64,000 bases of DNA from contig NW_026922894.1 in NCBI RefSeq assembly GCF_032062105.1, positions 1 to 64,000 on the forward strand. The letters are read 5' to 3'. Source of the stretch: Saccostrea cucullata. Taxonomy: Eukaryota. The position numbers and the translations under genes are program-made. Shown one piece after another: positions 9,044 through 9,175 of the stretch. The notes under the pieces are model-generated. The model saw only the letters and a list, made by a program, of their open reading frames with translations. It made no database searches and had not been told where the DNA came from. Every line of letters starts with the position of its first letter. Position 1 is the stretch's first letter.

Positions 9044-9175
9044 GTTTTCACTCTTTTACCCAATACTTAAAGAAACTTGGTCATATTGAGCATAGACTTT
9101 ACTTAGAATATTTTTATATTCTAAGTTAAGTCTCGCGAGATGTGACTATATTTAAATCACTCGAGTGGCGGCTGT
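9044..9175 (+). repeat. Internal B1-A2 junction of the split direct repeats, with a palindromic core ACTTAGAATA-TTTTTA-TATTCTAAGT (9101-9126)
   Basis: B1 (73 bp) is identical to B2 9316-9388; A2 is identical to A1. Confidence 0.95.

Follow-up and report, generated by a model that had tools for sequence, protein, structure and literature searches.

The stretch of DNA analysed here (the window; 64,000 nucleotides (nt), positions 1 to 64,000 of contig NW_026922894.1 of the oyster Saccostrea cucullata, assembly GCF_032062105.1) contains a young retrotransposon with a tyrosine recombinase (YR). It showed split direct repeats in the order A1 ... B1A2 ... B2 (repeat search of the window; B 78 nt, 97%; A 62 nt, 98%) and, beside an open reading frame (ORF) for reverse transcriptase with a weak RNase H-like match, a recombinase ORF in place of a DDE integrase (Table 1). 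The element is a split-direct-repeat retrotransposon of the DIRS order, Ngaro or PAT-like; the split-repeat layout of DIRS-order YR elements has been described before (PMC8547959, PMC4157794, PMC9210276). With the split-direct-repeat YR elements Ngaro, PAT-like and VIPER it shares both the layout A1-[gag, reverse transcriptase/RNase H, YR]-B1A2-B2 and the lack of a target-site duplication. Its internal junction, where B1 meets A2, carries an inverted repeat that is the subject of what follows.

Two perfect 10-nt arms, ACTTAGAATA (9101-9110) and TATTCTAAGT (9117-9126), flank the spacer TTTTTA (9111-9116). The arms can be lengthened to 13 nt (9098-9110 and 9117-9129) with one mismatch, and the repeat search extended them to 18 nt (9094-9111 and 9116-9133), again with one mismatch, around a 4-nt centre, which corresponds to 16 of 17 complementary positions with a 6-nt spacer. 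Re-reading of the sequence confirmed the letters and coordinates of arms and spacer given in an earlier sequence-only reading, including the single mismatch of the 13-nt arms. The palindrome is placed exactly at the border of the two repeats, as B1 ends at 9116 and A2 begins at 9117. Tyrosine recombinases such as Cre, Flp and XerCD act on inverted arms of 11-13 bp around spacers of 6-8 bp, and the arrangement at the B1/A2 border fits this canonical core-site layout. The window holds two perfect 10+6+10 palindromes (at 9101 and 30564), where 60 simulations with a first-order Markov model produced 0.28 on average; the 16/17+6 form was found once (at 9094) and in none of the 60 simulations. By chance statistics alone the palindrome is only modestly rare; its weight comes from its position and from comparisons. 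The second perfect palindrome of the window, AATTACTATT / ACCTCC / AATAGTAATT (30564-30589), is unrelated.

The ends of the element are the junction site cut in two, as the sequence-only reading had proposed: the right arm opens the element at 3149, and the left arm followed by the spacer closes it at 9388. Because the element starts with the right arm and stops with the left arm and the spacer, its termini form imperfect inverted repeats of 17 nt. The genome with which it was compared (1.17 Gb) contained five near-identical copies and one further copy at 85% identity, and these ended alike, in keeping with the fixed ends that the earlier reading implied. Six of the seven A1 starts agreed, six distinct left flanks adjoining the same first base of A; the seventh copy was decayed and lacked about 9 nt of A1. 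Five of the six B2 ends agreed as well, with five distinct right flanks directly after the last spacer base, the sixth (C17453) having a cut B2.

Uninterrupted paralogues of the host repeat in which the element lies made it possible to define the insertion to the base. In all 11 of them the left flank runs straight into the right flank, TTGACAT being directly followed by ATTTCATT. The insertion in the window is therefore exact, with no duplication or loss and with no base in common at the breakpoint, where the host reads T/A and the element A/T; the empty site shares nothing with the spacer. A second insertion, C16440, was exact in two of two paralogues, with a single TAT in the target and another in the element. 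Neither insertion had produced a target-site duplication. The sequence-only reading had pointed out a TTA common to both junctions (3148-3150 and 9386-9388). It is literally there, but the 11 empty paralogues reveal T3148 as its only host base, so the likeness is a coincidence, and the empty sites of the window and of C16440 rule out a crossover within a shared TTA. The AATA which the same reading had noticed in the left flank is present (3138-3141), although it lies 7 nt and not 6 nt from the junction.

A six-frame search of the genome with the recombinase yielded many loci at 40-53% identity. All 20 loci that were analysed possessed a B1/B2 repeat of 70-94 nt located 3' of the recombinase. 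They represented nine families with the same A1...B1A2...B2 layout, and each family had at the B1/A2 border an inverted repeat with letters of its own (three examples are given in Table 1). What the families have in common is the 6-nt register, with the innermost letters ATA-N6-TAT or near variants and with spacer letters that vary freely. A pattern scan of metagenome contigs added 52 loci, 36 of which had enough downstream sequence for evaluation; L133, L149 and L156 were left out as short of downstream sequence, together with 13 more whose tails were below 500 nt. A 3' direct repeat was present in 13 of the 36 and absent from 23. Six of the 13 (L122, L124, L128, L148, L154 and L163) showed a clear junction palindrome with unrelated arms and 9 to 14 complementary positions, and in these B extended 3 to 7 nt past the dyad centre. 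Three (L121, L162 and L146) were weak or unplaceable, with a weak odd-spacer repeat off the junction centre, and four (L125, L139, L140 and L171) were uninformative.

Co-variation of the arms was analysed in 14 junction 38-mers, 10 from this genome and four from the metagenome set. Excluded were L041 (decayed, with a 2-nt insertion), L122 (a MAFFT gap), L148 (an odd spacer of 9 nt), L121, L162 and L146. Arm-to-arm cells were paired in 87.9% of cases, compared with 69.8 ± 1.9% after shuffling (the observed value was reached in 0 of 500 shuffles) and with 36-43% when the partner arm was slid. Changes had occurred on both sides in 13 of the 16 arm pairs, and compensatory cells numbered 46 where 15.1 were expected. 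Some of the compensatory changes were G-T pairs, and several of the arm mismatches were not wobble pairs. The palindrome is thus conserved and co-varying in relatives, both in the nine families of the genome and in the metagenome loci, as would be expected if it were an attachment site in the sense of the sequence-only reading.

The position of the crossover was equally constant. Curated loci provided 30 independent right flanks and 35 left flanks for an analysis of targets, in which L019 and L095 gave no match. The complete spacer was found in B2 at all 20 loci analysed and in all 30 curated independent insertions; right ends without the spacer numbered 0 of 30, and the spacer preceded A1 in 0 of 35 left flanks. 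Because B2 always keeps the spacer and A1 is never preceded by it, the crossover must always lie where the spacer meets the A-side arm. This right border was used in 30/30 insertions and the left border was never a junction, so that across many families the crossover is kept 3 nt to the right of the dyad centre. Tyrosine recombinases form a 3'-phosphotyrosine and cut at the 5' ends of the spacer. Given this chemistry, a crossover at the spacer/A-arm border points to a cut in the bottom strand by the subunit on the right arm. As the genes lie on the plus strand, the bottom strand has the sense of the first (minus) strand of the complementary DNA (cDNA). A Tn916-like reaction, in which both strands are exchanged and the spacer becomes a heteroduplex, was considered and rejected in its simple form, since it requires two equal product classes and only one was seen (0/30, 0/35). 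An overlap region inside the right arm was also rejected because there is no symmetry around such a region.

The host sequence to the right of the insertions resembles the right arm of the inserted element. At positions 1-6, 95 of 180 bases of the right flanks matched the element's own right arm, whereas shuffles gave 48.8 ± 5.8 (maximum 71 in 10,000) and slid comparisons 37-56. The matches among the 30 flanks at positions 1 to 14 were 14, 20, 20, 15, 15, 11, 10, 12, 10, 12, 11, 10, 8 and 8. Several right flanks differed from the arm at one to four initial bases and matched from there on (xATCCC, xACCCT, xxTCTTA, xxxxCCAAGT), a pattern that resembles half-site recognition more than annealing over a contiguous stretch. 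The similarity was specific to the family. Matches to the arm of the own family were 160 of 360, against 139.7 ± 5.0 when family labels were permuted (0 of 20,000 permutations), and with positions 4-12 only they were 106 against 91.1 ± 4.4 (14 of 20,000).

The candidate enzyme is encoded by the element itself. The N-terminal half of the recombinase matched the ALOG domain of Pfam (ALOG_dom, E 3e-19) and the C-terminal half Phage_integrase (E 2e-5; 24.8 bits, slightly below the Pfam cut-off of 27.1). The closest solved chains were the ALOG domain of plant LSH3 (8p5q, E 5.9e-13) and XerD. In an alignment of recombinases from seven families the catalytic residues R199, K228, H314, R317, H337, W340 and Y349 were invariant, as were the zinc-ribbon residues H69, C73, C84 and C86. 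The recombinase frame was open in four of the five near-identical copies. For the pol ORF, Pfam gave no match in the roughly 150 residues beyond the RNase H-like region, and no methyltransferase model of that library is known to us; a methyltransferase-like domain is present in PAT and DIRS1-like elements and missing from Ngaro.

Table 1. Features of the retrotransposon in the window and junctions of three sister families
Feature	Position (strand)	Remarks
Whole retrotransposon copy	3149-9388 (+)	6,240 bp, exactly between host bases 3148 and 9389; defined by repeats, ends of other copies and empty-site paralogues
A1 terminal repeat	3149-3210 (+)	First 17 nt (3149-3165) = right arm = 5' end of element; direct and inverted repeat search
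gag-like ORF	4516-5244 (+)	Weak zinc-knuckle match (zf-CCHC, E 0.0046, under the Pfam cut-off)
pol ORF	5713-7581 (+)	Reverse transcriptase (RVT_1, E 1.5e-10); weak RNase H-like match at residues 378-467
Tyrosine recombinase ORF	7672-8832 (+)	Frame open from 7594; N-terminal ALOG DNA-binding domain and catalytic domain
B1 internal repeat	9044-9116 (+)	3' part = left arm (9094-9110) and spacer (9111-9116)
Proposed core site	9094-9133 (no strand)	Left arm 9094-9110, 6-nt spacer 9111-9116, right arm 9117-9133; inferred crossover 9116/9117
A2 internal repeat	9117-9178 (+)	Direct-repeat search
A-run between A2 and B2	9262-9295 (+)	Length varies among copies (34, 19, 24, 9 nt)
B2 terminal repeat	9316-9388 (+)	Left arm 9366-9382 and complete spacer 9383-9388 = 3' end of element
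Host half-site right of insertion	9389-9400 (+)	6 of 12 positions match the right arm
Junction of C2981 family		CATTTGGAATA / AATTTA / TATTCCAAGTG
Junction of C10819		Arms GTTCTCAGTGGGGAT and ATCCCCACTGAGAAC, 15 nt perfect
Junction of C13073		Arms TCACTGAGGAT and ATCCTCAGTGA

The explanation that we favour is that the palindrome preserves a copy of the element's joined ends and probably serves as the core site of the element's own ALOG-domain recombinase. One recombinase subunit would bind to each arm of the joined-end site. The subunit on the A-side arm, together with one on an arm-like half-site in the genome, would cut the bottom strand at the border of arm and spacer and swap strands; the well-kept half-site of the target is where catalysis on the target would have to occur. 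The second exchange, that of the top strand, would be absent or would leave no trace, and the junction would be finished by replication or repair. As substrate we envisage a joined-end form, either a circle or a multimer, the junction of which would be templated by the internal B1/A2 copy. The occurrence of a single product class without homology in the spacer fits a cleavage and exchange of one strand, that of the minus cDNA. The core of the attachment-site idea of the sequence-only reading is supported by the shared ends and by co-variation, whereas its TTA crossover and a sharing of the spacer in the manner of loxP or dif are not.

A number of observations weigh against this explanation. 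A circular or multimeric form, and binding and cleavage of the site by the recombinase, are predictions from sequence comparison. In canonical YR recombination the spacers of the two partner sites have to be identical, but the oyster targets have no homology to the spacer: the stretch of the target facing it matched at 62 of 210 positions, with 60.3 ± 6.3 expected. The left side of the target, taken at the 6-nt spacing, is only weakly arm-like (122 of 350 against 97.7 ± 8.2, of which the ambiguous L116 contributes 4). The similarity of the right flanks could reflect base-pairing microhomology and not recognition by a protein. Furthermore, the 6-nt register of the nine families was set by eye and the metagenome rows were picked by their best palindrome, while shuffle counts are not probabilities because the families are related. 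Of the 36 metagenome loci evaluated, 23 had no repeat, and among the 13 that had one, seven were weak or gave no information. Finally, symmetry maintained by compensation is equally expected of a functional hairpin.

A more specific version of the joined-end explanation is that the element integrates as single-stranded minus cDNA. The folded palindrome would present one arm as a duplex, the strand would be swapped with the genomic half-site, and replication would complete the product. The strand involved, the predicted hairpin and the single-stranded cDNA of DIRS-1 (PMC7192593) are in line with this, and the fact that the hairpin rebuilds only one arm duplex speaks against it; taken with its corollary concerning the YACTGTW motif (see below), we consider it possible but rather doubtful. 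Folding was predicted for the minus strand of the site with -13.2 kcal/mol (z -7), the left arm pairing with the right arm around a 4-nt loop. Integron cassettes (attC x attI) and CTX phage integrate by exchange of a single strand, after which replication finishes the product. The oyster element resembles these systems in its one-sided products, in needing no spacer homology and in that the strand presumed to be exchanged is the one that exists as single-stranded cDNA and is capable of forming a hairpin (for the attC and CTX-phage type see PMC2117344). It differs in the form of the hairpin, which is one arm duplex with a 4-nt loop and not two boxes with a spacer as in attC or the CTX-phage attP(+).

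The corollary concerns the DNA-binding half of the recombinase. ALOG domains of plants bind YACTGTW (PMC10927535). The outer half of the arm (left-arm positions 6-10) reads YACTG or YACTT at a fixed place in, for example, family 1, family 3, C13073 and L154. The overlap with the plant motif is a weak lead, because the families are related and the match comprises five bases only.

It might also be thought that the palindrome acts mainly as a hairpin in RNA or cDNA, with a role in priming, strand transfer, end-joining or packaging, and that the ends of the element are set by reverse transcription. We regard this as an unlikely main role. The predicted hairpin is stable, the compensatory changes include G-T pairs, and the cDNA of DIRS-1 is mostly single-stranded (PMC7192593), all of which speak for such a role. 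A 20-nt complement of B shortly upstream of the junction (8956-8975) likewise suggests that folding matters at the 3' end. This stretch, just 5' of B1, is perfectly complementary to 9058-9077 and 9330-9349 inside both copies of B and recalls the internal complementary region of DIRS1. However, folding alone does not predict that targets resemble the right arm of each family, nor that the crossover is fixed 3 nt from the dyad, nor that an unpaired centre with free letters keeps a constant even register; moreover, several of the arm mismatches are not wobble pairs. A hairpin role and a role as recombinase site are compatible with each other and not exclusive.

Less probable still is an explanation that needs no circle, in which a linear cDNA with terminal inverted repeats of 16-17 nt is joined to the target, its ends are recognised separately and B1/A2 is a mere template. 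Imperfect terminal inverted repeats are indeed present in the element, and for DIRS-1 linear single-stranded cDNA predominates and inverse PCR for circles failed (PMC7192593). Against this, the internal joined-end copy at B1/A2 would be difficult to account for if no joined form existed. YRs conserve the bond energy of the phosphodiester that they cleave, and a free 3'-OH end could not be joined in this way. Contigs with the order B-A-5' internal also occurred in a DNA run and in an RNA run, although they may be path artefacts.

These contigs came from a comparison of read contigs with positions 3389-9388 of the window. The element or a part of it was present in 20 of the 24 listed runs, 17 of which had at least half of the sampled words, and five runs were recorded as RNA. 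A DNA contig of 216 nt (X3) consisted of B, then A, then 84 nt matching the sequence after A1, with loose ends at 9175; a contig from an RNA library (X10) consisted of four spacer bases, A and a further 193 nt, of which the 30 printed letters matched the sequence after A1. The order in both is that of a circle or a head-to-tail multimer, which is suggestive, but since A (58 nt) is longer than the word of the assembler the contigs may be artefacts of the assembly path. In run X1 the depth of the junction word was 66, compared with 45 in the interior of the element. Tandem copies, circles or assembly paths are possible sources of the junction contigs and of the excess depth. Transcripts were also detected. 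In one RNA-library run, contigs spanned most of the element and included a GT..AG joint skipping 4459-4586 (128 nt). This joint was absent from the two DNA runs compared, so the spliced RNA is real, and 4459-4586 is probably an intron between the frame at 4154-4480 and gag. Another RNA contig skipped 4052-4150, a stretch with the second A-run of the element (4095-4130). A raw RNA run gave only 20 reads, from both strands.

The possibility that AT-rich sequence produced the palindrome by chance, for which the second perfect 10+6+10 palindrome of the window (30564-30589) could be cited, is effectively refuted by the failure of 60 simulations to produce the 16/17 form, by the exact position at the repeat junction and by conservation with co-variation across families and organisms, and hardly merits further consideration.

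How does this picture relate to what has been described? Where DIRS1-like elements carry long inverted terminal repeats, their junction is implicitly palindromic. For DIRS1-like elements, integration of joined ends by the recombinase, with a 3-bp circular junction in common with the target and without duplication, has been proposed (PMC3266345, PMC7192593, PMC8547959, PMC4157794); for the circular-junction model see Goodwin and Poulter 2001, as cited in PMC7192593, and Piednoel 2011 (PMC3266345). The oyster elements agree with it in part. In three of five family-1 and three of six family-2 insertions the sequence after B2 begins with the same 3 nt as A, and the TAT of C16440 agrees with the published three-base idea (PMC3266345, PMC7192593). 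They depart from it in that no base is shared at the crossover in roughly half of the insertions and in that the similarity to the target takes the form of an arm-like half-site of about 12 nt, specific to the family. Compared with loxP, FRT and dif, the site has inverted arms of 10-17 nt, an asymmetric 6-nt spacer, an apparent crossover at an arm/spacer border and a recombinase with a XerD-like catalytic domain; unlike them, it has no spacer identity with its partner and only one of its two borders is seen as crossover.

DIRS1-type retroposons with an ALOG recombinase have been reported from marine animals, among them molluscs and an oyster genus (Iyer and Aravind 2012, PMC3537659), and the recombinase of the present element has the same N-terminal ALOG domain with a zinc ribbon. 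That study calls the metazoan copies recently inactivated, whereas here we found open frames, coexisting families and RNA contigs with a spliced joint; in the portion of its text available to us it covers the ALOG class without treating the recombination site. The open papers searched (including PMC8547959, PMC7192593, PMC3266345, PMC4157794, PMC13465315 and PMC3212892) treat the repeats but mention no palindrome of arm, spacer and arm at their junction, although earlier subscription papers may describe one. Likewise, the papers searched gave no account of co-variation of the palindrome, of a one-sided crossover or of a target half-site, and we therefore do not judge priority. As far as searched, the picture at the level of the site is new, while the element itself belongs to a known kind.

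Some further features of the element and its surroundings deserve mention. The A-run between A2 and B2 lies about 140 nt past the B1/A2 junction and might be a polypurine-type primer site or the trace of a poly(A) tail. Comparable runs measured 21 nt in the C2981 family, 16 nt in the C6052 family and 25 nt in C363, and five other families had none of at least 8 nt between A2 and B2. The host repeat that surrounds the element (2867-3148 and 9389 to roughly 9600) is very abundant, with 1,571 candidates at first look and copies that are 96-98% alike. The halves of this repeat are partly inverted complements of one another, and it may be an element similar to a miniature inverted-repeat transposable element (MITE). 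The right flank of the C363 copy (L037) is the reverse complement of the start of the A repeat of a related element, and in the C17453 copy (L018) a 33-nt piece of A was found 32 nt upstream of its own A1. It seems that these elements occasionally insert into, or next to, elements of the same kind, which has also been reported for DIRS-1. Short A...B units without the coding part were present at C21058:354429-354579, C20396:78269-78637 and C13564:455251-455531, and are analogous to solo long terminal repeats.

Models of how YR retrotransposons get into the genome have existed since 1985, but they have hardly been put to the test. A study of DIRS-1 from 2020 noted that the specificity of the recombinase had not been investigated experimentally (PMC7192593). 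The present case provides a defined site of 38 bp, a predicted position of cleavage, natural variants of the arms with their own recombinases and a predicted half-site in the target, and the pair of site and enzyme can be tested with oligonucleotides and recombinant protein. The single product class is an asymmetry that discriminates between mechanisms. If the element does integrate as a single strand, integron attC and CTX-phage integration would have a counterpart in eukaryotes, and on the corollary the YACTGTW motif of plant ALOG proteins would be a fossil of arm recognition. The case may also tie the DNA motif of the plant ALOG regulators to their proposed transposon ancestry. The palindrome marks where the ends of the element meet, and our analysis suggests that it is the site of insertion by the element's own recombinase and that the ALOG-YR class is still active in a bivalve.

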